Part shown: one piece after another, positions 1,534-31,793 of the stretch
Position numbering within the stretch: position 1 is the stretch's first letter
Layout: each line of letters starts with the position of its first letter
Source: Geosiphon pyriformis uo1
Lineage: Eukaryota > Fungi > Glomeromycota
Assembly: GCA_016748015.1 (NCBI GenBank)
Contig: JAAOMT010000261.1
Span: forward strand, 260,733-324,732
Length of the DNA stretch: 64,000 nt
Reading direction: 5' to 3'
Notes under the pieces: model-generated
What the model saw: the letters and a program-made list of their open reading frames with translations, nothing else
Database searches by the model: none
Told to the model about the DNA's origin: nothing
Position numbers and translations under genes: made by a program

Positions 1534-3620
1534 ATGAGGATTGCAACGTGGAACATCAATGGGATTCGATCCCTTATCAAATATCATCCGTAATTGGAGT
1601 GTCATTTGTAATTTTTTCTTTTAAAAATTTATTCAAATCTTTGAGTTTTCATTCTTTCAAATTTTCAAAATAGTTGGTGCGAGCATAAGAATTACCAGGT
1701 AGACGATATATTTCCAATGCTCTAAACTTTTTGCCATGATGCCCTTTCTCACATATTCATAATTAACAGAAAATATTAGAATCACTGGAAGCTGATATAA
1801 TTTGTTTTCAAGAAACCAAGACCACCATTGAGAGACTTGATTCAGATATTGCTCTAATTCCTGGTTATGATGCTTATTTCTCAATGACAAAAAACAATAC
1901 TGCATATTCTGGCGTAGTAACGTACGTGAAAAATGCTACCTTTACTCCCTCAAAGTCAGAAGAAGGTATATCAGGAATTCTCAATACAAAAAATTTCGAT
2001 AAGGATGATCAAATTGGATATTACCCAACCGGATATTCAACCAATGAGTTATTAGAAATTGATTCGGAAGGGCGCACCGTAATTTTGGACTTTGGAGCAT
2101 TTGTACTATTTAATGTTTACTGTCCTCATGAGTCAAATCCCGAACGACTTCCTTTCAAAATGAAATTCTACAAAATTCTAAAAGAAAGGGTTGAGGCTCT
2201 TATAAAAGCCGGGAGGAGAGTGATTGTTGCTGGTGACATAAATGTCACCCATCAAAAAATTGATCATTGCAACCCAGAAAAGTCCGTCAAAGAACAAAAA
2301 TTGATCAGCTTTGAAGACCATCCTGCTAGAAAGTGGTTTGATAGTTTTGTCGCACCAAACGGCCTTATGGTTGATGTATGCAGAAAGGTATAGTAGACCC
2401 ATTTATATACATTAAGCAAACTTGGACTAATTCAATGAATAAATATGTTGGTTGATACATTATAGTTTCATCCAGGAAGAAAAGATATGTTTACATGTAA
2501 GTTGATTATGTATTCTTTTATATTGGAAACTTACTTAATGATATCCCATTGATTTTTAGGCTGGAATCAAGTCATCAACGCAAGGTGTGGTATAATAATT
2601 TAGTCCAATATATTTTTCAATTATTGCTATCGATCGCATAAAAGAACTGTTAATATGTTGTTCGTCTTTTTTAGACCCGTTAACTACGGTAAGATTGCGA
2701 ATTTTTTTATAGATACTGTTTTATAATATTAAGTCCTTACGAAAGAGATTGGCAATTAGGGACGCGTCTAGATTATATTTTGGCTAGTCAAGATCTCGTG
2801 AAATGTTTGAAGAATTGCGATATTTATCCGAATATTATGGGATCCGATCATTGTCCAGTAATTGCAGAGATAGTTGAGGAAATTCGGGAAATGCAACCGT
2901 TGGGGGGCGACCCGACAAAACCACCCCGATTATGCGCAAAATATTTACCTAAATTTTCGGGCAAGCAGCAAACACTAAAGAACTTCTTCCTTAAAACTGG
3001 AACAAAAGAACCTAAAGTGATTGTTCACAAGGAATCTTTTACCACATCTTTATCGAAAGCTAAGCCCCGAACTTTTTCGAATCCCAAAACCGCACTCCCT
3101 TCGGCACAGGCTTCTCTTGATAAATTTTTTAAGCTGTCAACAATTGAAGAAAGCCTCACTTCACAAGAATTTGACCCTAAAGAGGGAGGGCAGGATATCT
3201 CGATAGAGGATTGTTTCTCAAGTCCAATAAAAAGAGGGGAATTTGAAGAGAGTTCTCAGAGACTCGATGTCAAAGATCAATGGAAAGCTCTTTTTACTCC
3301 CCCCCCTGTGCCAAAATGTAAAGTGCACGGAGAGCCGTGCAAATCAAATCGTGTAAATAAGACTGGGCAAAATAATGGGAGAAAATTTTATGTTTGTTCC
3401 AGGTACTTGATAACATATTGCAATAAATTTGATTTCATTAAGAAGTTATTCAAATTAATCTTTTATGGCGATACTTAGACCTATTGGGTCATCACAAAAT
3501 GATCGCTGCGATTTTTTTGAATGGGCAAGTAAAACCTCAGCTTATTCAAAAAGACCCGATAATGAGGAGCAAACTGAAAAAGGAAATAGAGCAGCTAAAA
3601 AGTATAAAACTAAAAAATAA
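1534..3620 (+). CDS. APN2: Class II AP endonuclease Apn2/APE2 (multi-exon)
   Basis: MRIATWNINGIR start; ICFQETK, YSGV, DSEGR, NVYCP, GDINV, RLDYIL and GSDHCP EEP motifs; PIP boxes; C-terminal GRF zinc finger (CKVHGEPC...GRKFYVCSRP...RCDFFEW). Confidence 0.95.
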
Positions 3621-3651
3621 AGAAATTTGCCTAAAAATAGTCCCTTCATTA

Positions 3652-4664
3652 CTAAGTGTTTTTTATCTTGCATAAGAGATGTTCAATATGATTCTTCATT
3701 ACTGGTTGGCCTTTAGATGTGCGTTTAAAAAGCTTCTTTTTTGTTTGTTTTCTTTTCACATAATATGCTAAACGCTTTTCTTTTCGGGCTTCAGATTCTT
3801 TTATTTTGGCCTAAAAACGCAAATATTAACATCTAAGGGAGGTTGTGCTTCTCAAAATATCATACAATGTAGCGAACCTCTTTTTGATTCTGTGCCTCCT
3901 GACGGAGCTGCTCTGTTGCTTCGAAAATCTTATTGAATGGATTTGGCTTCAAGGATTTTCTCGATCTAAGCGAGATAAGGGATGGTATTATCTATAGTCA
4001 AAATAGAAGTGACTTCAAAGGAACAATATATGTACTTTATCTGTTTGGCCTTAAATTAAATGGTAGGAATGAGTTTTTATTTGTTGTGTCAGATTTTTCC
4101 AATATCCTGTCATGAAATTTTTTATTTGCTTGCCTCAGATAATCTTTTTTCATCCAACATTTTATTTTTAAGATTTTTTTCGGCTTCCGTATCCAAATCT
4201 TCTTTCAAATCTTCGTCGATATGATTTTTTTTATTAGGATTGGATGCATCCCCTTTAGATTTTCCCTTTTCCGGTTTCCTTTCATTGGCAGTTGTTTCCC
4301 CGTTAAGGTCTTGAACTTGTGAAACACCCTGTGTGAATATCTACTTTCGCAAAAAGCATCAAGTAACATAAAAAGAGATGGGAATAAAATTGGTCCAAGG
4401 AAGGAGCAAAACTGACCTCTTTGTAAAATTCCGGCGTATTAACGCTTTGTTTCTTGATTTTGGTGTAGTAATTTTTTTTGATTTTTGATTTTTTTATAAT
4501 TTTTTCCTTTTTTACTTTTCTGGCTGGAATTAAAGGCTATACTAAGTTAGAATAGGGTAAAAGTCAAGATATTTTACAAAACAAAACTTGAGACCTTTTT
4601 CGCGATAAGTGAGAAAACCTTCATTATAGGAAATTTTGAGGTTATTTTGTCTAGTAAAGGTCAT
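3652..4664 (-). CDS. rRNA-processing protein Fyv7/CCDC59(TAP26)-like, Lys-rich (multi-exon; missing from the ORF track)
   Basis: Spliced minus-strand frame ends KPNPFNKIFE...KKLFKRTSKGQPVMKNHIEHLLCKIKNT*. The KGQPVM..I..LL.KI signature is typical of this family. Start codon inferred. Confidence 0.8.
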
Positions 4665-20013: not shown

Positions 20014-21925
20014 ATGTTTAGTGTTCAAAGTTCGTATAAAGTCGTTCCCTTAGGTCTTTTGGCTTTTTCGAAACGGCCGATAAATTTTCTAAATCCCATA
20101 TCACGTTTTACTTACTCAACAATGTCTTTGTCACAAGGTTGGTTTTTTTTTTATCTAATTTAAATTTTTATAATTTAAATCAATTTTCTTTTGAACCCCA
20201 CTGTTTCAAACAAAACTTGCTTAAAACTTATATTCTACTTATCTTTGTAAAAGGTAAAATTCTCACTTACGAGAAAATTAACCCTCAAATCAAACAAGTT
20301 GAATATGCGGTACGAGGTGAATTAGCCATTCGTGCGGAACAAATTAAGACAGAAATTGAGAAATTTGGGAAAGGACGTTTCCCATTTGAAAATGTTGTCA
20401 ATTGTAATATCGGTAACCCACAGCAACTTTCTCAACCACCAATCACATTCTTTCGTCAGGTGGGCATGATCCTTTGTATATTGCAGATTTCATAACTTGA
20501 GATAAAATTTTATCTCATACAAATTTTACCATCCTAGGTCGCGTCTCTCGTCGAATACCCGGATCTCTTGTTAACGGAAAATAAGGAAAAAGTTAAAGCT
20601 TTATTCCCCGAAGATGCTATAGAACGTGCAAGGACATTATTGAAATATGTGGGTAGTGTTGGTGCTTACTCGCATTCACAAGGAATATCATACATCCGGC
20701 AGGACGTGGCAAAATTCATTGAAGGTTAAATAATTAATTTTATCAATCAACTAAAATGAATTTAAACTTAATTTTAATTGTCAATCTAGAACGGGATGGG
20801 TTTCCCTCGGATCCCGAGGTTATATTTCTCACACAAGGTGCCTCATCTGGGGTTCAAACCATAATTCAAACAATTATTGGCCATCCAAACGTCGGTATTA
20901 TGATTCCTATTCCACAGTATCCTCTATACACCGCAACATTATCATTATACAACGCAAAACCTGTACCTTATTATTTAATTGAAGAAGAGGACTGGGGACT
21001 TGACATAAATGAACTTTCTTCTTCTATAAGAAAGGCACGTGCAGATGGAACTGATGTTCGTGCATTGGTCATTATTAATCCAGGAAACCCGACTGGTCAA
21101 TGTCTTTCTGAAGAAAATATGAAAGAAATTATTGATTTTTGTCACAATGAACGCGTCATTTTACTCGCAGATGAAGTTTATCAAACAAACATTTATGAAC
21201 CTTCTACCAGACCATTTCACTCCTTCAAAAAAGTTCTTTCCTCAATGGGGGAAATTTATAAAAATTTTGAACTTTTTTCTTTCCATTCCGTGTCTAAGGG
21301 TATGATTGGAGAGTGTGGGCGTCGCGGGGGATACTTTGAATGTACAGGAATCGATCTTAAGGTGGTTTCACAGATATATAAGATTGCCTCCGTTAGTTTG
21401 TGTCCTAATGTTCAAGGACAGATTATGGTAGATTTGATGGTTCGACCACCAAGGCTTGGGGATCCCAGTTATGAATTATATAATAAAGAATATACTTCAA
21501 TTTTTGAAAGTCTAAGACGAAGAAGTAGAAAATTGGCCAACTTGTTTAATCAATTAGAAGGCGTCACGTGTAATGATGCTCAGGTATTGTTGACTTTTCT
21601 ACGTCATATTCTACGTTTACACTTTCTCTCAATATTTACAACTTTGGGTCTTTTTTAGGGGTCCTTGTATCTCTTTCCAAAAATTTCTCTACCCCAGAAA
21701 CTAATTGCCGCAGCACGCGAGGGAAATAAACAACCAGACGAATTTTATTGTCTTGCTATGTTAAATGCAACTGGTGTTTGCGTGGTACCCGGAAGTGGAT
21801 TCGGTCAAAAGGATGGCATATGGCATTTTCGAAGTACCTTTTTACCTCCAGAAGAATTGTTTGATGATTTTTGTATGAGAATTCGCAAATTTCATCAAGC
21901 TATACTAGAAAAATATCGAAACTAA
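20014..21925 (+). CDS. ALT1: Alanine aminotransferase (PLP-dependent) with putative mitochondrial presequence
   Basis: VEYAVRGE, NIGNPQQL, GAYSHSQG, INPGNPTGQ, LADEVYQ, FHSVSKG.IGECGRRGGY and GVCVVPGSGFGQ. Confidence 0.96.
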
Positions 21926-22069
21926 CAAACTAACTAACTAACTAACTATTGATCATAAAAATAGCTTAAGAAAATATTATTAGTAAGAATTAAAATTTCT
22001 AGCCTTTACGAAACAGGCATGACCCTTTTTCCTACTCTTTGTAAAATTTAAAAGAACATAAGCATATAT

Positions 22070-22103
22070 GGGGCGTGCTGCAACAAAACCAGACAAAGTG
22101 AAC
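22070..22103 (+). repeat. Left terminal inverted repeat
   Basis: Exact reverse complement of 29230-29263. Confidence 0.95.
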
Positions 22104-22169
22104 ATTTAACGTCACTCAGGCTCGAATGATTCAATGTTGGAATGAATTCTTCAATCTTCAGTAACTTTC

Positions 22170-22814
22170 TTATTTCAATCAAGGTCACTTTCTAACCTCA
22201 ATTTGAGTGCTCTGTTGAGAATTCAATTTTTCTAACCGAGTTTTTAATCAAGCAACTTCTTCCTTATAAGATTCTATTTCGTTAATCAGGTCTTGAGGAG
22301 TTTGTTTTTTTAATCTTTTTACTTCCGCCTCTAACTCTTTTATTCTATGTGACAATTCTTGCTTTTGCCTTTTATTTCACTCCTCAGACTTTTCATGAAA
22401 CTTAGCAATTTCTTCTCTTTCGATTTTTAATGCTTCTTTAGTAGCAAGTAATTCTTTCTCTAATTCTTTGGTTTTATTTTCTAAACGAGAAGTGAAAGAC
22501 TGAGCAATTAAAGTATTTTCAGAAAATGGTTGAGCAGGTTTATCTTTAAGCAACTCACAAAAACAACCTCTCCTATTCCTCATCAATTTACCACACTTTT
22601 CACAATAAGGAAGAATATTGTTTTCCAAACCCTCTTTACAAGTAGCACAGATATAGGCAATATCAACACAGTCACCTTCTTTATTATTAGCCATTATTTC
22701 ATGAGTACTAATATTAAGATCAAAACCAATCTCAGCCTGAAAATTTAACAAACAATAATTACAATCTTGCTTATCTCCTTCTGCTACTTCAAGAACTCTA
22801 TATTCTAATTTCAT
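22170..22814 (-). CDS. Cargo ORF B: intronless Cys-motif/coiled-coil protein, 214 aa in genetic code 4, MRE-like
   Basis: The track ORF stops at TGA 22377, but the frame continues through 4 TGA to TAA 22170: ...SEE(W)NKRQKQELSHRIKELEAEVKRLKKQTPQDLINEIESYKEEVA(W)LKTRLEKLNSQQSTQIEVRK(W)P(W)LK*. N-terminal CNYC, CATC and CEKC motifs. Confidence 0.75.
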
Positions 22815-22817
22815 AAA

Positions 22818-23588
22818 TTACTTATTCTTTTGTAAAATATAAGCATGAAACTTCTCTTGAACCTTTTCCTTAAATTCATGAGCTTTTTCTTTTGTTGTAT
22901 TTACTAACTTTTTAATTTGTTGAAATTTCTTAGGTTTAGGCTCAATTAGTTTAGTTAATTCAACTAACTTCTCATCCTTGGCTATTAAAATCTTTTCTAA
23001 TTCGTGTATTTTCAATCTCAAGTCTGTTATAAAACCATCCTTTAGCATTTTCATTTCAAACACCCTTCGTTTATGCCATTCTTCAGATACATCAACAAAT
23101 TCCAAATGATTTTTTTGTTCTAATTCTAGATCTTTTTGTTTCACTTCTAAATCAACAATATTCTTTTCTAAAATAGCATTCTTTTTATCTAATTACTCAT
23201 TCTTCTCAGTTAATTCATTCTTCTCGATTTGTAAACTCTTAACTTCTTTATTCTCTTTTGCTCATCAAGACATTGAATTGTGATGCATGTAAATAAGACG
23301 AACAAAGCTTTTTCTAAACCCTTTGTCTCCTAAGTGTTGTAATTCACGAGGGCGAAGTCAAAAATAATCTGTAACTGCTCTTATATGTGATTCATTTGGA
23401 TTCCGGTTTAAACTACCAATTACTTCTCTTATTTCCTCTTCGGTTAAAATATTATTTTCATTAACACTAAATCTTTCTTTTAGTTTGCTGATTGCTTGGT
23501 CTTTATCAGCTAGTTGCTTTTTCAATGTTTCTATTTCGTTTAATAATTCTTTGTTTGCTTGCTGTAGTGTTTCTAGAATATTTACCAT
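22818..23588 (-). pseudogene. Cargo ORF A: intronless coiled-coil protein, 256 codons in genetic code 4, one TAA lesion, MRE-like
   Basis: Track ORFs 23358-23588 and 22818-23144 share one frame, joined through TGA at 23358, 23265 and 23262 (DYF-W-LRP, SMS-W-W-AKE) and one TAA at 23193. Its stop lies 3 nt before the ATG of ORF B. Confidence 0.75.
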
Positions 23589-23691
23589 GGTTTATTTTTA
23601 TTAAGTATATAAATAATTTTACTTTGAAAAGCGGGGAAAGACAGCAATATTTGTGAAAAACAACCTAGACTTAACAACATCGAGTGACGAT

Positions 23692-25455
23692 TTATTCATT
23701 GTCATTATAGGTTGGTCTTGGACAAGTAGTATCCTTAAATTCATCTCGGACAAATGGGCGAACGTGGTGATAGAGGTATTCTTGGCGTTTCAGCTCCATA
23801 GGAGGAGGTACCAGCTCCAGAAATGACAGGGCCTTGATTTTTTCTATAACTGTTGAAGCCTCCGATTTGCCTATTTTTAACAGTTTGAATTCCTGGAAAG
23901 GTCCATTAGCAAATTCTTGAGCTTTGACAACACCCAGCTTAGCACTAGTAAAAAGAAAGTGCTGAAACTTTTGCAAGCCAAGCAACTTCTTGAAGTGAAT
24001 TTCCAAACTACTCAGGATATCAAAATATTGAAAGCCCTTGCTACCATTATAACACCAAGCTTTATTTAGTCCAGTAATGCTAGACTTTTTCACTACATCT
24101 ACAATGTGATCAACACAATCTACTGTGGTTTTGCGATAGAGTCTTTTGATCAGACCAAAACTACCATCACATTTGAATTTAGTATGGCCTGGAACCATGA
24201 AGTTCAATTTAATACTTTCATAATAATCAGCAATTACCAGGTACAGGTAAAACCAAAGAGTGGTATTGTTTTTGTTTTGTCCGCCTGCATTATCACAAGT
24301 GATTTTTAAGTGCTTTTCACCCTTATTTAATTGCTTTATTCCATCAAAGACTAGACTAAGGGTGCCATTAGGACCTTTTCCAAGCAGTTCATTCTCATCC
24401 AGCACATAATTAATTTGCTCTCGTACTGCTTCATCCTGGATACCAAATAGGTGCACTTTACGAGCACTAAGATAATACACCTTACCAATTTGTTGGTCTG
24501 AATGAGGCACATGGACGTTTTGGGCTCAGTCGTAACTGTAATGGGCCACCGCGTCAATGCTGCAGTATGGTGCTTTGTCTTTCAGTACAGAATAATTTTG
24601 ATCGACGAGTTTTTTTTGCTCTTCTGCCAACTTGGTATTTTTGTTATAATAATTTCTCTCTAGTTTGGCTTTGGCCAGATGCTCTTTATATTTCTTTAAT
24701 AAATCTTGGGCCTCTTCCTCTTTACGAGCTTTGAACTGTAAGTCATTTCGCAAATGCTGGCAAGTATCGCATAAATCGGTCCTCGGACTCATGATTTGAA
24801 TATACGGGGTTAACTGGTGCCATAATTTGCAGAATGCATCATACTTGAGGTTATGCAATTTATTATTATCCTCCAGGCCGGCTAAAAAATCCCGGTGAAC
24901 AGACCTGTAGCTCATTTCTGCCGGTAGAAAGATAATTGATAGGGTGACTCGATTAACATTTCTTACTGGGCTAGGTAAGCCGTGAACTTCGGCATAATTT
25001 AGCAAAAAATTCTTGACGGCAGTAGCAACATCAATATTGATAACCATCCTGGATTTTCACTGTGGCATTCTTTTTACATTACCATGGACCCGCGGTAGAA
25101 GACCATTCTTTAACAAATGATTTCGAATGTTTTCAAAATAATTGCGGCCAATGCCAAGCATATTGAGGTAAGTTTTTTGGCAAATTGGAGTGCTACGATT
25201 TCAGCAGTAGACAGTTCTCTTATTGACGCGAGCTTTCTTTTTAAGACGACGGCTAGTATTGGTCACTCCTCCATCCATGGTCTTGAGTTGGGCCACTAAA
25301 AAGATGTCTTGTTCGGGTTTTGTTAGCGCTTGAAAATCTTCCCGCAGTTTGGCAAATTCTTCCTTGGGCAACTTGGGTGAGCAACCGCAACCACATCCTA
25401 CTCCCAGGAAATAGAGAGCTTTTTCGTATTCATTCATAATTATGTCGTCTACCAT
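23692..25455 (-). CDS. Sola2-family DDD transposase, intronless, 587 aa when TGA=Trp
   Basis: Three track ORFs are one frame interrupted only by TGA at 25201, 25057 and 24526. Motifs: GCGCGC, PICQKTYL, PRVHGN, SPRTDLCDTC, HYSYD(W)AQ, CDNAGGQNKN and GHTKFKCDGSFG. Confidence 0.88.
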
Positions 25456-25565
25456 ATATATATATTTTATATATATATTACGCACAGTTTGTCCGGTTTT
25501 GTAAAATTTCTTCCACGTGTATTAAAGAATACATAGGACTATCCCTATATAAATGCGTACTTTTA

Positions 25566-25850
25566 CTAATTATATTTTCGTTTTTTCCTTGATCCGTCAG
25601 ATGTTTCTTGTAATTCTCGCTTCTTAGAATTTAATTCCTGACTTCGTCCAGAAATATCTTCTTCGTAAGATGGATTTATGCTTCTATTAGAACTGTCTAA
25701 TTGTTGGTAGATTTCGTAGGTAATTCTCTCTTTATCCAAATATTCTTGAATAGCTTTGATGTCAAGTAGTTTGAAAATGTATGGGGCAATTTTTTCACCC
25801 CGCTCTTTTTTCAAAATGCTTCTAATAGCACTGTAGTTTTTCGGTTCCAT
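25566..25850 (-). CDS. Small intronless hypothetical ORF inside the transposon, basic C-terminus
   Basis: 94-aa ORF MEPKNYSAIRSIL...SRKKRKYN*, upstream of and co-oriented with the transposase. Confidence 0.45.
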   Translation of the reverse strand: MEPKNYSAIRSILKKERGEKIAPYIFKLLDIKAIQEYLDKERITYEIYQQLDSSNRSINPSYEEDISGRSQELNSKKRELQETSDGSRKKRKYN

Positions 25851-26024
25851 AGTGGATCTAATGTAAATTAGTTTCATATAGTAGATAGTCGTATATATCT
25901 AGTTTTTATTACTTCCAACAAAGCTAAATAGGGTTGCAAATATCTTCTGCATTTGTTCAATGATGCTGTTTCCGCCTCGTCAACCCACCCCCCAAGAATA
26001 CATGCGTAATTTTTCCCTTGTCAC

Positions 26025-28898
26025 TTAGAGAAAAGGATTCTTCTCTTCGTCTGCAAATAAGCTCGGCTTCGATGTGGTTTCCGTTGACAACTTGGGAAAG
26101 TGTGCAGAAGGCAATTAAGAACACTTTCGGCACATTGAAAGTTGTGTGAGACACAGAACAAAACTCACCTTCCTTGAAATCCGTTTTTTGCTTGGTGTGG
26201 CAAACTCTGGTGGGCCATTGTCCACCTGTATTCTTGCTGATTCGAATTGTTCCCGCTCAGCCCTCGCTTTTATCGCCTTGAACCACGAAATAGTGTTACG
26301 CATGATGTTCTGTTCAAGGAAAGAATATGGGTGAGTGATATTCCGAACGGATGAAAAAAAGAAAGATACGAAATGTTACCAACTTTAGTTCGCAACATTG
26401 CACGCGCAACGTCGATAAAGCCCTCAAGTTGGTCGTAAGTAGTTGGTATGTTGAATTCAGCCATTTGCCGTGACGCGTAGAAGCCAGCACCAACGTAAAC
26501 GACCAGAATTACGCGGATGAAAAAAAAGGAAGAAACAAATCCAGGCATTATTAGCTTGGTGAATGCTTTAAGCACTGGTTTTGTAACCGCTCCACCGCCC
26601 GCTGTGGAAATGTCCTTTAGAAGTGCTTTGTGCATGTCTCGTAACGTTTTTTGAAGTTTCAAAGTGTCGGAATCAATCTTCGCTTTGTTATCGGGTTTGG
26701 ACCCGGCACGTTCGCACATAGAAAATTCCTGTCCCCATGATTTGTTGGAAAGATCGTGCCGCTGTCAAAAAGTAGCTGTTAGTAATCCGAACATTACCAA
26801 TAATAATAATGGTATATTAAGCGAGCATACCGTAAACATCCAGTCTACATGAAATCCTTCTGCGTTGTCGGGGGAATCCAAAGCACTCGCTTTGCGATTA
26901 CGTGACGCTCGGGATACCATTTCCCCACTAATCCGGTCAATGATATGAACAAGAAGCTAATTACGAAGATCAAGCAAACCCGCAGGAAGAAGATAGTGCT
27001 TACAAGTGTTGATCAGCGACACCCTTTAGACAAGAGAAGATATGAGATTTGACAAACATATCTATATCCCGTTCAGAATTATGGCGTGATGCAACTGATT
27101 CCGAGATCCATTCGCACCTATTGGGTGTATAAAACTTTAAATCAAAATTACGCGTATCCATGAGTGTACAATGTACTGTAAAATGACAAACATACGTATA
27201 ACGGAGAAGTTCAAAAATATATCCGACATCGTCATGTGTACAGTCCTCCTCTTTCATATCAGCTGGAGATGGTGAAGTTGACACCTCATCTTCGAACAAA
27301 ATCTGGTCCTTTTTTTTGGTCCCCACAAGTTTTTGGGCTTCACATAGAGCTCCCCGGATCCCTTCAATCTTCACGAGATTACCAATTGATTTCAGTTGAT
27401 TCGAATCGAGCTAAATTCAAAATGTATTATTAGCGAAGAGTAAGAAAAAATACGGTAGGTTTTAAACATCATCGTTTTACCTTGCCAAGCATTTGCAGAT
27501 AGCTCTCTGGCAAAGTTTCCACCACCATCAAATCCTCCTTCGGGTTCCCATTGTTGAGTGCGGAAGCAAACACGGCATTCAATTCTTCAAATTCCGAAGA
27601 AGAGAATTCGGAAACAATGGCTGAATCTGATACGTCAATAATCCTCCAACACAACGCCCTATTGTAAGAATAGAAAATTACATAAGGGTTCACCAGACAA
27701 GGCACAAAAAGCAAAACAATCGGTATTTACTTTGTCGCTGCTTCTGACTGAGGGGTATTGGATCTGAGTTTGGCAGCTTTGGTCAACCAAGATGGCATCG
27801 GCAAATCAAACTCCCATTTGAGCGAGATGGTATCGTCTACTTGAACAGACTGATTTGTGCGGACATCGGTAAATTCCAAGTGACATTGGTTTGGATTAAA
27901 ATCAACTCTTGAGCCCTTACAGTTTTGGAAGTCTCTAATTCCACTTCGTGAACATGAAAAATATCATTACAAGCCATGCCTTTACCGTCCTCAGATGAAT
28001 GCAAGCCACAGCATTCTTGGCTGTCTTCAATCGTATCCAGGGAACGTTTTGTACCAGATTTCTATAAGTGGATATGATGAGAATTGTGCACAAGATTGAC
28101 CTACACATTAACATCGCCATTAGAATTATTCAGACCAGTTTATTGTTGGCATCTTCCAACACTGTCGTGACCGCTGTAGTGGTCCCCCGAGCTATCGTGC
28201 GAGCTATGTTCATCTGCGACACAAGGAATTATTAGCTACGCAGAAGTAATAATACCAGAGCACTGAATTACTACAGAGACAAGAAAAGCTGTAGACGCGA
28301 TAAACCTTGTCAGATTCCAGTCCGGAACCCATGAGAGTTGATTCAATATCATCCCAAAAGAGCCGGACCTTTAGATATTGACGACGATGGTCCTCCATAG
28401 TTGTTGGTAATAAAGAGAGGTACGTAAGTATGTACACCAGAGAAGTAGTATAGGGGAATAAATTGGCATTGGGCTGGAGGCTGACAACAACGAGCACCAA
28501 CGGACAGCCAGACCATAAGGTGGGCAACCGCCAGATGCCCACCGTAGTTGTGTGCACAAATCGGTTTTGAACCAGACTTGCGATATACGACGTGCAAGAG
28601 GGTCAGAGCGCAATATAACCCTCCTAGCCGGATAACCCGTATGGAGCCCCCAACCAAGTGCAACGTAGACGATAACTCAAAATCTTACCTTGAACTTCTG
28701 TCGGAGCTCAGTAGCAGCCGCCTTTATTTCTTCCGAGTCGTCATTTTGAAGTTCCTCCAGATTTTTTAAAAGTTTGCTAGCTTCCCTTTGAAACGAGGAA
28801 CTGAAGTCGTCTTGTTGTCGGCGGTATGTGTAATACCCGATAAAACTATAATCTTTTGCGGGGATAATACGGAAATACGAGATAGAACTTTTCGACAT
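26025..28898 (-). CDS. Cargo: intron-containing fungal gene with a putative PD-(D/E)XK restriction-endonuclease-like C-terminal domain (exon structure approximate)
   Basis: GT-AG introns; MSKSSISYFRII start; C-terminal GEMVSRAS...GFHVDW...QEFSMCERAG...KIDSDTLKLQKTLRDM pattern, a repeat-associated Mucoromycota family as recalled. All Trp codons read are TGG. Confidence 0.65.
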
Positions 28899-29229
28899 TG
28901 TATATAGTTGTGAATTTTCACGGTTCATAGGCAACGTCACTTAAAAACAAATCGCCAAGCCACAGGAGTAATTCCTGTTGGGCAAAGTTTCTAGTATTAT
29001 ATTGAACTCCTTCAACCAAACCAATATCCCAATGATATCAATGCTATTGATCAAGGTTGATGAAATGCTAAAAACTGAAACTGGAACAAACTAGGCAACA
29101 GTTTGGAGAAAGAGAGAGAAAGCAATTAAGTCGAATATCACCAAATTGATTCCTACTGTGTTAGTAACCATGATAATAACAGCATGACAGTATTTTTTTT
29201 AAATAAAAAAATAATAGATGATATCATAA

Positions 29230-29263
29230 GTTCACTTTGTCTGGTTTTGTTGCAGCACGCCCC
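29230..29263 (-). repeat. Right terminal inverted repeat
   Basis: GTTCACTTTGTCTGGTTTTGTTGCAGCACGCCCC followed by ATAT. Confidence 0.95.
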
Positions 29264-29297
29264 ATATTACAACCGAATTTTGAGGGGGGTTGCTTTA

Positions 29298-29470: not shown

Positions 29471-30664
29471 ATGAGCAATAAGACAGTATCACTTTATTTT
29501 GATTCTATTCCGCAAGAATTTTTTGAGCCAAAATCATGGACTTACAAGGGAGAAGGCAATGCAAACATCATTTTGGCTTATATTGGATCAAATAAGAATT
29601 TTGTAAAAAAAAAAAATTAAACTCCCAATTTAAATAAATATTTGAAATTATGAAAAAAAAAATGAATAAAAAGTAATGAATTTTACAATTTTATCCTAAA
29701 ATATCATCTTACAATTTAAATAAACAAGTCGTCCACAGTCCTTCGATTAAGAAAATCATCAAATTTGTTAAATGATGACAAGGAAATCACGACTTTTCAT
29801 TCCACATCAAAAATTATAAACCCGGATCCACAAACTTTTACAGTATCCTACATTCAAAATATAATGGCACCGTTGATCGGCCGAGAATATATTGGTAGCT
29901 TGGTAGGAAATTTATAATAAAACTTTTTTTTGGTTTTTTTGTTTTTTTTGTTTTTTGTTTTTTGTTTTTTGTTAATCTGTTGAAATTAAAAAAAAAATGG
30001 AAATTAGATGTTAGTAAAAACTATTCCTAATTTCTTAAGAGAGATCTCCCAATCAATCAGGCCATTTCGACCAATAGGACGAATCATCAAAGATATTGAT
30101 ATCACACAACCTTACATGATCATAAGTATGGATCATACAAAGATGACATTATTATATGTACCTGATTCATCATCTATAAACCAGCCAACCACCACGATAT
30201 CAATCGAGATCAAGGTATTTGATTTATTTTATCAAAAAAAAAAAAAAAATTCTCATATATCAAGACAGTATCATTTAAATCTATAAATTATTTTCATTTT
30301 CATTTTTATTTTCATTTTCATTTTTTAAGCCAAAATGGGCATTCCTACCAAGTTCATCTTATATCTCTGAATCAAATTCGATCAAACGAGAAACTTGTCG
30401 TTTTTGCATGCACAAACATTTGAAAAATTCAAAGAAACAAAAAAAATTAAAAAAATTAACAGATTATTGTCCATTAGATTTATTTTCATTGGAGAAAACT
30501 AGATTGATAAAATCATTGAATGAATTGATTATTACACCAGGAAATAATTTTAAGGTGTTCAAGGATGGGAGAGAACTTAATTTAGAAGAGGTATTTTTTC
30601 TTTTGCTTTTGCTTTTTATGATCGAATTTAATAGAGAATTTTCAAAAATTAATTAAAAAACTTC

Positions 30665-30735
<71 letters not shown>

Positions 30736-30751
30736 TTTATTTTTATTTTTA

Positions 30752-30784
<33 letters not shown>

Positions 30785-31793
30785 GAATAATTGGTTGATG
30801 GAATTACATGAATTCTTCTCTTCGAACCCTGAAAATCTTGAATTTTCAGATATAACCAATACTCAATCAAGGTATCCAATTTTTTAAAATCATTATAACC
30901 ATTTCAAAAAAGCTAAACTATCACCAGCTCAGATATTCATAATTTTGAATAGGACACGAGAAGGATTAATTAGATTACTCACTCAAACAATAATTCAAGA
31001 ACAAATCTTATTCTCGAGATTGAAAAATTTGCAAAAGACCTTGGACGAATTGGATATTGAAGGAATTATAAAACTTTTATCTTTTTCAAATTTAGGAACT
31101 ATATCAGAATTTCTTCAAAAAGAACCAGAATTAGATGATTGGAAAAATACCGTTGAAAATTATTTGAAAAGATTCAATTCTCATTTGGATGATGATATAT
31201 CACATAATTCAGGGATCATTGGTAATCTTTTTTTTTATTTTTTTATTTTATTTTATTTTATTTTATTTTATTTTATTTTATTTTTTGATCATTTTAAAAA
31301 TACATTGTAATCATCAAGTTCATTTTCTCTATTCTTTTTAATTTTCGATATGTCCGACATAGCCTTATCTACCCTTCCTTCGTTACAACAAAATAATGCG
31401 ATCAGTGAAATCGATATTCCGCAACGTATCTACGAATTTCTTCTTTCTACAACTATAAAAGATTGTTCAATTATGTTTACTTTTCAGAAATCTCTTGGAA
31501 AAGATTCAAAATTTTTCCCCAAACTCAAAGATGACCACAAATTATTCAAAGAAAATATCAAACACGTTACAATCACCCCTTCTTCCTTAACCACTGACAG
31601 TTCAAAAACGTTTGAAGAAATGACAATCCCAGATTCCTTCCACCAAGATTTTCATTACAAAATCAATGTACTAGATTTGGATCCGAAATCCATTGCTAAA
31701 ATTACTTATTATCATGAACTAGACACCCAAATTGTGCAAACCTATTTAAATTATATCGGACAAGGCATTAATGGAAAAAAATGTTATGAATGA
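29471..31793 (+). CDS. IPK1: Inositol-pentakisphosphate 2-kinase (multi-exon)
   Basis: WTYKGEGNANIILAY, VLRLRK, IEIKPKW, CRFCMHK, YCPLDLFS, NNFKVF, LLSTTIKDCSIM and LDLDPKS. Confidence 0.93.
30668..30784 (+). repeat. (TTA)n microsatellite in an IPK1 intron
   Basis: Long interrupted tta array; it produces the spurious poly-Asn ORF 30649-30879. Confidence 0.95.

Follow-up and report, generated by a model that had tools for sequence, protein, structure and literature searches.

A Sola2-like transposon family with TGA-rich genes in the nucleus of Geosiphon pyriformis and in Mollicutes-related endobacteria

Introduction

How does a transposon that lies between two fungal genes come to carry genes that can be read only in a bacterial genetic code? 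This question is raised by a 64,000-nucleotide stretch of DNA from the fungus Geosiphon pyriformis (contig JAAOMT010000261.1, positions 260,733 to 324,732 of the forward strand), which we call the window and in which positions are counted from its first letter. A 7.2-kb element at positions 22070-29263 of this nuclear DNA holds a transposase gene and two further genes that are open only if TGA specifies tryptophan (Trp), as in genetic code 4, and beside them a gene with spliceosomal introns whose Trp codons are TGG. We report that the element belongs to a family whose members reside in fungal nuclear chromosomes and in the chromosomes of Mollicutes-related endobacteria (MRE; ‘Candidatus Moeniiplasma’). 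The explanation that we favor as probable, taken as a whole, is that a fungal transposon entered an endobacterium, was recoded there, and was later inserted into nuclear DNA.

Transfer of genes from fungi to MRE is documented, for example for MGMT and PknD kinases (PMC10507103), and mobile elements abound in MRE genomes (PMC4916391). Sola2 DNA transposons have likewise been described, including the Sola2-Fanzor chimeras of dictyostelids (Bao & Jurka 2013, PMC3627910). We found no published description of code-4 transposons in fungal nuclei in the literature that we searched.

An element inserted in a nuclear chromosome

The window copy is a genuine insertion into the fungal nucleus, bounded by terminal inverted repeats (TIRs) and by a target-site duplication (TSD). 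Its two 45-nt arms are imperfect repeats whose first 34 nt are identical, and the tetranucleotide ATAT abuts each of them. The initial annotation had described an element with such boundaries between two ordinary nuclear genes; its coordinates are exact, and Pfam matches identify both flanking genes. These features are as follows.

22066..22069, no strand: left target-site duplication ATAT, 4 bp abutting the left TIR
22070..22114, plus strand: left TIR, 45-nt imperfect arm, begins GGGGCGTGCTGCAACAAAACCAGACAAAGTGAAC
29219..29263, minus strand: right TIR, 45-nt imperfect arm
29264..29267, no strand: right target-site duplication ATAT, 4 bp abutting the right TIR
20139..21925, plus strand: left flanking host gene with introns, class I/II aminotransferase (Pfam Aminotran_1_2, E=1e-27), outside the element
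29765..31793, plus strand: right flanking host gene with introns, inositol-pentakisphosphate 2-kinase (Pfam Ins_P5_2-kin, E=9e-15), outside the element

Read on the minus strand from the right TIR to the left, the element holds the intron-bearing gene, a small open reading frame (ORF0), the transposase, ORF2 and ORF3. Its TIRs and its AWWT target duplication mark it as Sola2-like, a class assignment in which the transposase is placed by the Pfam family DUF7869 rather than against Sola2 references. The contig that carries it extends to at least position 324,732, the end of the window, and the long host ORFs within the window encode Trp by TGG, with zero in-frame TGA. Several reverse-transcriptase/LINE-like (long interspersed nuclear element) and other retroelement ORFs with scattered stops, which are ordinary nuclear repeats, occupy window positions ~40000-64000.

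This insertion is one of many. The 34-nt TIR has 64 matches in the Geosiphon genome at three or fewer mismatches, compared with zero for a reversed control, and paired TIRs delimit both full elements of 5-8.6 kb and MITEs (miniature transposable elements with inverted repeats) of 420-540 bp, with 4-bp AT-rich duplications. At 42 family ends, the adjacent outer four nucleotides read ATAT 26 times and ATTT, AAAT or AATT 10 times (36 of 42 AWWT). Contigs that bear nuclear copies are 0.2-2.7 Mb long, and annotated Geosiphon proteins are found among the family members. The TIRs hardly vary in Geosiphon, while the subterminal DNA beside them is for the most part 75-89% identical between copies, and few copies are near-identical. 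This combination of nearly invariant ends and diverged adjoining DNA suggests that the insertions derive from many diverged but functional lineages, and supports a diversified source that is external or functional in some other way. Approximately 100 diverged copies were found in total in Geosiphon, Ambispora and soil metagenomes. On soil contigs, two family elements are arranged tail to head, 335 bp apart (L058:5503-5838, L061:6744-7079).

Could the juxtaposition of two genetic codes result from bacterial DNA that was wrongly joined to a fungal contig during assembly? Fungal assemblies do contain MRE contigs, and MRE assemblies may hold host contigs (PMC11423566). To this can be added an observation on the window itself. 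We compared it with the Logan contigs of three sequencing runs, namely X1, which is the genome’s own, and X2 and X3 from the same organism, and neither junction of the element is spanned by these contigs, which break within the repeated TIR. A mis-joining nevertheless seems very improbable to us. DNA depth in run X1 is 76-84 and does not differ between the half of the element in code 4 and the half with the intron gene, precise TIR and TSD boundaries recur at dozens of loci on megabase-size contigs, and independent assemblies of many metagenomes and of Ambispora show the same architecture. The converse error, in which fungal contigs are mis-binned into bacterial genomes, is taken up below with the bacterial copies.

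TGA as a sense codon throughout the family

Four predicted genes occupy the left half of the element, all on the minus strand.

23692..25455, minus strand: transposase, Sola2-like (Pfam DUF7869), 587 codons; frame open only with TGA as an amino acid codon; TAA stop
22818..23588, minus strand: ORF2, coiled-coil protein; 3 in-frame TGA and an internal TAA at 23193-23195
22170..22814, minus strand: ORF3, Cys-rich (zinc-ribbon-like) and coiled-coil protein of 214 codons; 4 TGA, 0 TGG; TAA stop
25566..25877, minus strand: ORF0, 103 aa, no Trp, C-terminal RKKRK; directly upstream of the transposase

Proteins read through TGA were handled by local scripts, either with X at TGA or with translation table 4. 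The transposase has in-frame TGA at exactly amino acids 85, 133 and 310 and no other stop. Our recount over the transposase, ORF2 and ORF3 gives the same sum as the initial annotation, which had noted that these three genes are open only with TGA as Trp: 10 TGA, one TAA and no TAG, with TAA as the terminator of all three. TGA does not serve as terminator in the genes examined: the code-4 genes of the window end in TAA and the MRE genes that we checked end in TAA or TAG.

The predicted transposase matches DUF7869 (PF25273) with 64.7 bits over profile positions 10-180 of 192 (cut-off 26, E=1.1e-17), and its database relatives contain the same domain. In an alignment, acidic residues are conserved within the motifs YD(W)AQ, CDN and KCDGSFG, and the basic clusters of the window protein, at aa 67-79, and of the ORF0 C-terminus are candidate nuclear localization signals. 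ORF0, ORF2 and ORF3 match no Pfam family above threshold; ORF3 yields weak, sub-threshold matches to double-zinc-ribbon families alone. The DNA of ORF0 is kept in sister copies (element query positions 3442-3810), and L058 and L061 also contain this ORF.

The initial annotation had viewed ORF2 and ORF3 as bacterial genes that were captured by the element. This part of the proposal is not supported for the window copy. Sister elements and metagenome elements show the same arrangement, in which a coiled-coil ORF and a Cys-rich coiled-coil ORF accompany the transposase, although alternative modules follow the transposase in some lineages, and no bacterial homologue of ORF0, ORF2 or ORF3 is present in the ~85 kb of MRE loci that we fetched. 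Whereas the internal TAA breaks ORF2 in the window copy, its homologues in other copies run without interruption for 221-372 aa with 4-12 TGA. Judged by these comparisons, ORF2 and ORF3 are conserved accessory genes of the family.

Evidence for the code-4 reading comes from the same tryptophan sites in other copies. In 19 sister copies of the transposase in Geosiphon (49-87% amino acid identity over aligned segments), five conserved Trp columns are occupied by 45 TGA and 33 TGG codons, and eight of the 19 have aligned segments without any stop beyond these columns. The same columns in 80 soil-metagenome loci hold 174 TGA and 112 TGG. Other stops in these loci number 25; a TAA that recurs at position 583, five codons ahead of the stop of the window copy, accounts for 10 of them. 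Thirty-six copies are fully open under table 4 (114 TGA and 77 TGG at the Trp columns), with a median pairwise dN/dS of 0.09 and dS saturated at ~1.3. Downstream of the transposase, ORFs across the family have ~30% GC and contain 403 TGA compared to 109 TGG, a preference of approximately 4:1 that is comparable to MRE genes such as N6_Mtase. Because TGA in one sister copy stands where another has TGG, at shared Trp sites, and because dN/dS is ~0.09, we conclude from the alignments that the code-4 reading is real and family-wide, and is not a product of decay.

One further nuclear element extends this pattern to a gene of another kind. L023 (C669:920973-926193) is non-autonomous, has perfect family TIRs and an ATAT duplication, and includes a 436-codon ORF with 15 TGA and 0 TGG, which may be code-4 cargo in a nuclear chromosome. 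This ORF has zinc-finger-like Cys pairs and a histidine-triad-like segment.

One possibility to be weighed against these data is that the copies are dead relics, created either by G-to-A hypermutation resembling repeat-induced point mutation, or by amplification of a single ancient bacterial insertion with a standard-code helper, such that each TGA is simply a nonsense codon. Decay does occur in some copies: a Gigaspora rosea copy (L120) has TAG, TAA and TGA at Trp sites, several Geosiphon copies bear an extra TAA or TAG, and ORF2 of the window has its internal TAA. In the 36 copies that are otherwise open, however, the only stops are TGA and all of them fall in Trp columns, at a dN/dS of 0.09. 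Column 85 is TGA in 15 of the 16 Geosiphon copies that cover it, which indicates inheritance through diverging functional lineages. Furthermore, no TGA-free transposase copy is present among more than 100 genomic matches in Geosiphon; apparent TGA-free frames of 1000-1250 aa (L140-L143) proved to be masked stretches of N and were rejected. Finally, the spliced gene of the same element, which the initial annotation had advanced as an internal control against element-wide G-to-A mutation, retains 7 TGG and serves that purpose, and the sister copies themselves exclude decay. The likelihood that the family consists of relics is therefore, in our estimation, slight.

A second alternative, the main rival, accepts TGA as a sense codon but places its decoding in the fungus. 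The family would then live in nuclei only, with UGA read as Trp through a suppressor tRNA, readthrough or A-to-I editing, and with the bacterial copies as side branches. When eukaryotes read through UGA, the residue inserted is mostly Trp; transcripts of the transposase region are present in the fungus, the conserved TIRs and MITEs suggest nuclear activity, and all copies from the sub-clade of the window (sub-clade B, see below) with identifiable context are nuclear. The decoding that this requires is nonetheless difficult to reconcile with several observations. Host genes in the window lack in-frame TGA. ARAGORN finds no tRNA in the window or inside 10 related elements (a tRNA-Gly lies outside one TIR), and the sole match to a tRNA-Sec model is sub-threshold and corresponds to tRNA-Ser(CGA), in searches that were short of a whole-genome tRNA set. 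The bases that follow TGA codons 85, 133 and 310 are A, A and G rather than the leaky C context, and ORFs with 4-15 TGA, tandem TGATGA and a 4:1 TGA preference would be impossible to express by leaky readthrough. Moreover, contigs of runs X2 and X3 contain the transposase region and are identical to the window across codons 85 and 310, with TGA retained; editing of UGA to UGG was rejected on this basis. Run X2 is from a different sample, and both runs contain RNA whatever their labels, as their contigs skip introns. We therefore consider a strictly nuclear existence for this family improbable.

Two smaller features of these contigs concern the transposase region. Joints in X3 at 24971>25096 and 25165>25244 have GT..AG on the plus strand, which suggests spliced antisense transcripts of the transposase (window 24971-25244), but they may alternatively derive from sister copies. 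Contigs of X2 have one extra base in homopolymer runs at 25172 (transposase, past codon 94) and at 26519 (an exon of the spliced gene), reflecting either strain polymorphism or homopolymer error.

Copies in Mollicutes-related endobacteria

If the family was maintained under a bacterial code, then copies should be found in bacteria that use it. A protein search yielded two sequences, P0249 and P0315, that are annotated ‘MAG: Candidatus Moeniiplasma glomeromycotorum’ and that are 57% and 53% identical to the window transposase. They reside on contigs with 30% GC and TGA-rich genes from three metagenome-assembled genome (MAG) assemblies. One copy (L129) lies on a 124.8-kb contig between the restriction-modification (R-M) genes ResIII and N6_Mtase, and a TIR-like left end precedes its transposase. 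The other (L131-L133) has its TIR and ATAT 700 bp from the S19-L2-L23 operon, in the neighborhood of genes for PemK, S19, L2, L23 and L3 as well as ATP-binding cassette (ABC) transporter and phosphotransferase system (PTS) genes. Although this second element is 5'-truncated, it ends with GGGTCATACTCCAATAAAAGGGTCTAAAGTG followed by ATAT at L131:12728, which is a variant of the TIR and target of the window element. In the MRE copy that is near full length, Trp columns 85, 212, 310 and 401 are occupied by TGA. Code-4 copies with the family TIR and ATAT are thus found in Ca. Moeniiplasma contigs, as a search for MRE homologues proposed in the initial annotation had sought.

These contexts also bear on the idea that fungal contigs were mis-binned into MRE MAGs. 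All genes that neighbor the MAG copies, including ribosomal and R-M genes, are full of in-frame TGA (13 TGA and 2 TGG in N6_Mtase), and the contexts are shared among MAG assemblies: that of P0315 is found in all three, and that of P0249 in at least two. Mis-binning therefore appears as implausible as the mis-joining considered above.

A third bacterial context emerged from a fungal genome project. The contig CAJVPS010005553.1 (L134) of the Ambispora leptoticha assembly bears eukaryotic gene-model annotation, and holds a code-4 copy with TIR and ATAT that adjoins DNA_pol3_alpha with 5 TGA. This contig is evidently endobacterial, judging from its genes, so that the Ambispora assembly would contain MRE DNA.

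In the MAGs, the transposase is followed before the TIR by type I R-M methylase and specificity genes (L131:8629-12728; L129:11020-13579), to which L131 adds a leucine-rich repeat (LRR) gene. The bacterial copies thus appear to carry defense and LRR cargo.

Phylogeny of the transposase

We built a tree on the C-terminal 337 columns of the transposase that includes fungal and MRE copies, a comparison that the initial annotation had called for. The code-4 sequences are monophyletic (SH-aLRT 98), and standard-code sequences from Gigaspora margarita, metagenomes and animals fall outside. Relatives from G. margarita and Rhizophagus irregularis (~40% identity) lack TGA, and their codon at columns 212 and 310 is TGG. 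Because the code-4 clade is monophyletic and adjoins standard-code sequences with TGG at these columns, a polarity from fungus to bacterium is supported by the tree. Together with the MRE copies and the interchange of TGA and TGG, this agrees with the earlier suggestion that a fungal transposon entered an endobacterium and drifted to TGA for Trp. Sister nuclear copies that carry TGG at these sites amid scattered stops, with MRE homologues absent, would have been expected otherwise; what we find is TGA/TGG interchange and homologues in MRE.

Two sub-clades can be distinguished. Sub-clade A comprises the MRE MAG copies and the MRE copy associated with Ambispora, along with a single contig from Ambispora and a single element from soil. 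The window copy belongs to sub-clade B, together with the remaining Geosiphon copies, sequences from Ambispora and Diversispora eburnea, and the majority of the soil contigs. Transposases of sub-clade A require a -1 shift at a conserved A10 run, as seen in the soil element L035 (L035:1424-1469), the Ambispora contig L038 (L038:1358-1451) and the MRE MAG copy L129 (L129:10001-10070), whereas the sub-clade of the window has no such shift. By analogy, this run resembles a site of programmed frameshifting or of slippage during transcription.

An element of sub-clade B in Ambispora (L135:7365) has a left TIR that is identical to that of the window over 34 nt. An intron-bearing Rad4-type gene lies outside this perfect TIR, and for this reason we consider the element nuclear. 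The transposases of Ambispora and Geosiphon are 79-87% identical, and these sequences suggest horizontal spread between fungal genera.

A spliced cargo gene in the standard code

The right half of the window element presents a very different gene.

26025..28928, minus strand: standard-code cargo gene with spliceosomal introns, spliced in X2 and X3 contigs; read-based exons up to 27999, predicted ones above
26091-26168, 26310-26383, 26762-26830, 26928-27003, 27116-27193, 27411-27480 and 27658-27729, minus strand: seven cargo introns, GT..AG, supported by X2/X3

This cargo gene is transcribed and spliced by the fungus. When the RNA-supported exons are joined by script, they form an open ORF of more than 500 codons with 7 TGG and 0 TGA that ends in TAA at 26027-26025, in accord with the initial annotation, which had described a spliceosomal-intron gene with TGG as its sole Trp codon. 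The transcript extends to at least 25534, and ORF0 falls in its 3' part, where RNA contigs cover 25484/25534-26090. Searched one by one, the cargo exon ORFs match no Pfam family above threshold. Degenerate paralogues of the gene exist elsewhere in the Geosiphon genome, and a distant one is present in the sister element L022.

Variable standard-code halves are general in the family. The Ambispora element L135 has an AAA-ATPase-like gene, and L024 a kinase fragment. Soil-metagenome elements L072 (2-799) and L040 (3-911) have, beside the code-4 transposase, long TGG-only ORFs of 37-55% GC with a GTDPG motif and a weak match to Cas12f1-like_TNB, and this cargo may be a Fanzor/TnpB-like nuclease. 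The cargo of the window is unrelated to that of L072 and L040, and a nuclease-like identity is unsupported for it.

Proposed history of the family

Our proposal is that the family goes back to a transposon in the standard code, of a Glomeromycotan or another eukaryotic type, which would have become established in MRE (Ca. Moeniiplasma), wall-less bacteria that live free in the fungal cytoplasm, and would have been maintained there by selection. In these bacteria TGG and TGA would have turned synonymous, and the accessory genes would have come to favor TGA. From this code-4 reservoir, elements would integrate repeatedly, by cut-and-paste, at AWWT sites of fungal nuclear chromosomes. Once there, the code-4 genes are transcribed, but translation would be expected to halt at codon 85 of the transposase, and the window copy would be immobile alone unless transposase made in the endobacterium reaches the nucleus. 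One possibility for the passage from bacterium to nucleus would be a transposase-DNA complex that is released upon lysis. The other half of the element holds the standard-code intron gene, which the fungus does transcribe and splice. Within this scheme, we infer both the upkeep of the window’s sub-clade in MRE and the place where the spliced cargo was acquired.

Several observations weigh against this history. The MRE copies belong to sub-clade A and are 49-57% identical in amino acid sequence to the window transposase, which itself belongs to sub-clade B, and no sub-clade B element was seen in a bacterial context among the copies found. The MRE copies seen are either frameshifted, possibly in a programmed manner, or 5'-truncated. 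No MRE contig or bacterial 16S is present in the Geosiphon assembly, where a search for bacterial small-subunit (SSU) rRNA gave weak matches of 393-536 bits that we read as the fungus’s own nuclear and organellar SSU genes. Pattern scans of 185,579 bacterial and archaeal species genomes, run with the transposase by itself and with an alignment of it, yielded no relative, a negative that says little because the Moeniiplasma MAGs that hold copies are outside that collection. The MITEs and conserved TIRs of the nucleus might equally reflect activity there, for which our proposal can account only by transposase that the bacterium supplies. The junctions of the window copy are unspanned as noted above, and an intact, expressed intron gene in an element that supposedly reproduces in bacteria needs either recent nuclear capture or fungal selection. 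Even so, we consider fungal origin, recoding in the endobacterium and later nuclear insertion the best explanation of the data as a whole, and a reasonably probable one.

A stronger version of this history can be imagined, in which the elements are true dual-host shuttles that pass back and forth between the chromosome of the endobacterium and the nucleus of the fungus, and between fungi via host-switching MRE, moving genes both ways. The code-4 module would be translated only in the bacterium, with its transposase acting also on nuclear copies and MITEs, and the standard-code intron module would be expressed only by the fungus. We hold this version to be possible but rather doubtful. The initial annotation had seen in the element a concrete vehicle for two-way transfer between host and symbiont; the MRE homologues and the nuclear copies with TIRs and TSDs speak for such a vehicle, while the return trip of a two-way traffic is something that we only infer.

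Relation to known systems and significance

The family resembles Sola2 in its TIR-bounded cut-and-paste organization and in its 4-bp AT-rich TSDs (ATAT, AAAT and ATTT), and resembles the Sola2-Fanzor chimeras in that a conserved transposase half is combined with a variable half, which in two metagenome members includes a gene that is weakly TnpB/Fanzor-like (PMC3627910). Unlike Sola2, its transposase half is in code 4, it has two conserved TGA-rich accessory ORFs, and it has members in bacterial chromosomes. It also differs from the genes that MRE have obtained from their hosts, since here the transferred entity is a eukaryote-type transposon that is still mobile, is recoded, and is present in nuclear chromosomes as well.

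As DNA of endosymbiont code that is transcribed in host chromosomes but untranslatable as such, the nuclear copies are comparable to nuclear mitochondrial DNA segments (NUMTs) and to Wolbachia DNA in filarial and insect genomes (PMC2882956). Those inserts arise by end-joining of random fragments, whereas this family transposes, with TIRs, TSDs, a preferred target and many independent events.

Agrobacterium T-DNA is a segment resident in bacteria that integrates by defined ends into the host nucleus, where its genes are expressed by eukaryotic machinery. The likeness is one of functional analogy only, in that a bacterial-resident segment with defined ends enters the nucleus with genes that the host expresses. 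The ends of the present family are transposon TIRs, however, its ancestry is eukaryotic, and it has no known transfer apparatus.

Programmed -1 frameshifting or slippage is used by bacterial insertion sequences of the IS1 and IS3 families. The transposase of sub-clade A, split at its A10 run, is similar in this respect, and the shift-free sub-clade of the window is not.

There are practical consequences for the study of these genomes. Standard-code gene calling fragments the genes of the family, as is seen in annotated Geosiphon and Ambispora proteins, and such DNA may be assigned wrongly when contigs are binned by their code or composition.

Phylogenies have revealed gene flow between Glomeromycota and MRE but not its vehicle, and this family offers a likely one: a eukaryote-type transposon with precise ends that is present in both genomes, and whose coding sequence records a long period spent under the code of the bacteria. 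Members of the family are plentiful in soil metagenomes, and its 34-nt TIR is identical in two genera of Archaeosporales, which indicates that it may also spread between fungi via endobacteria that switch hosts.

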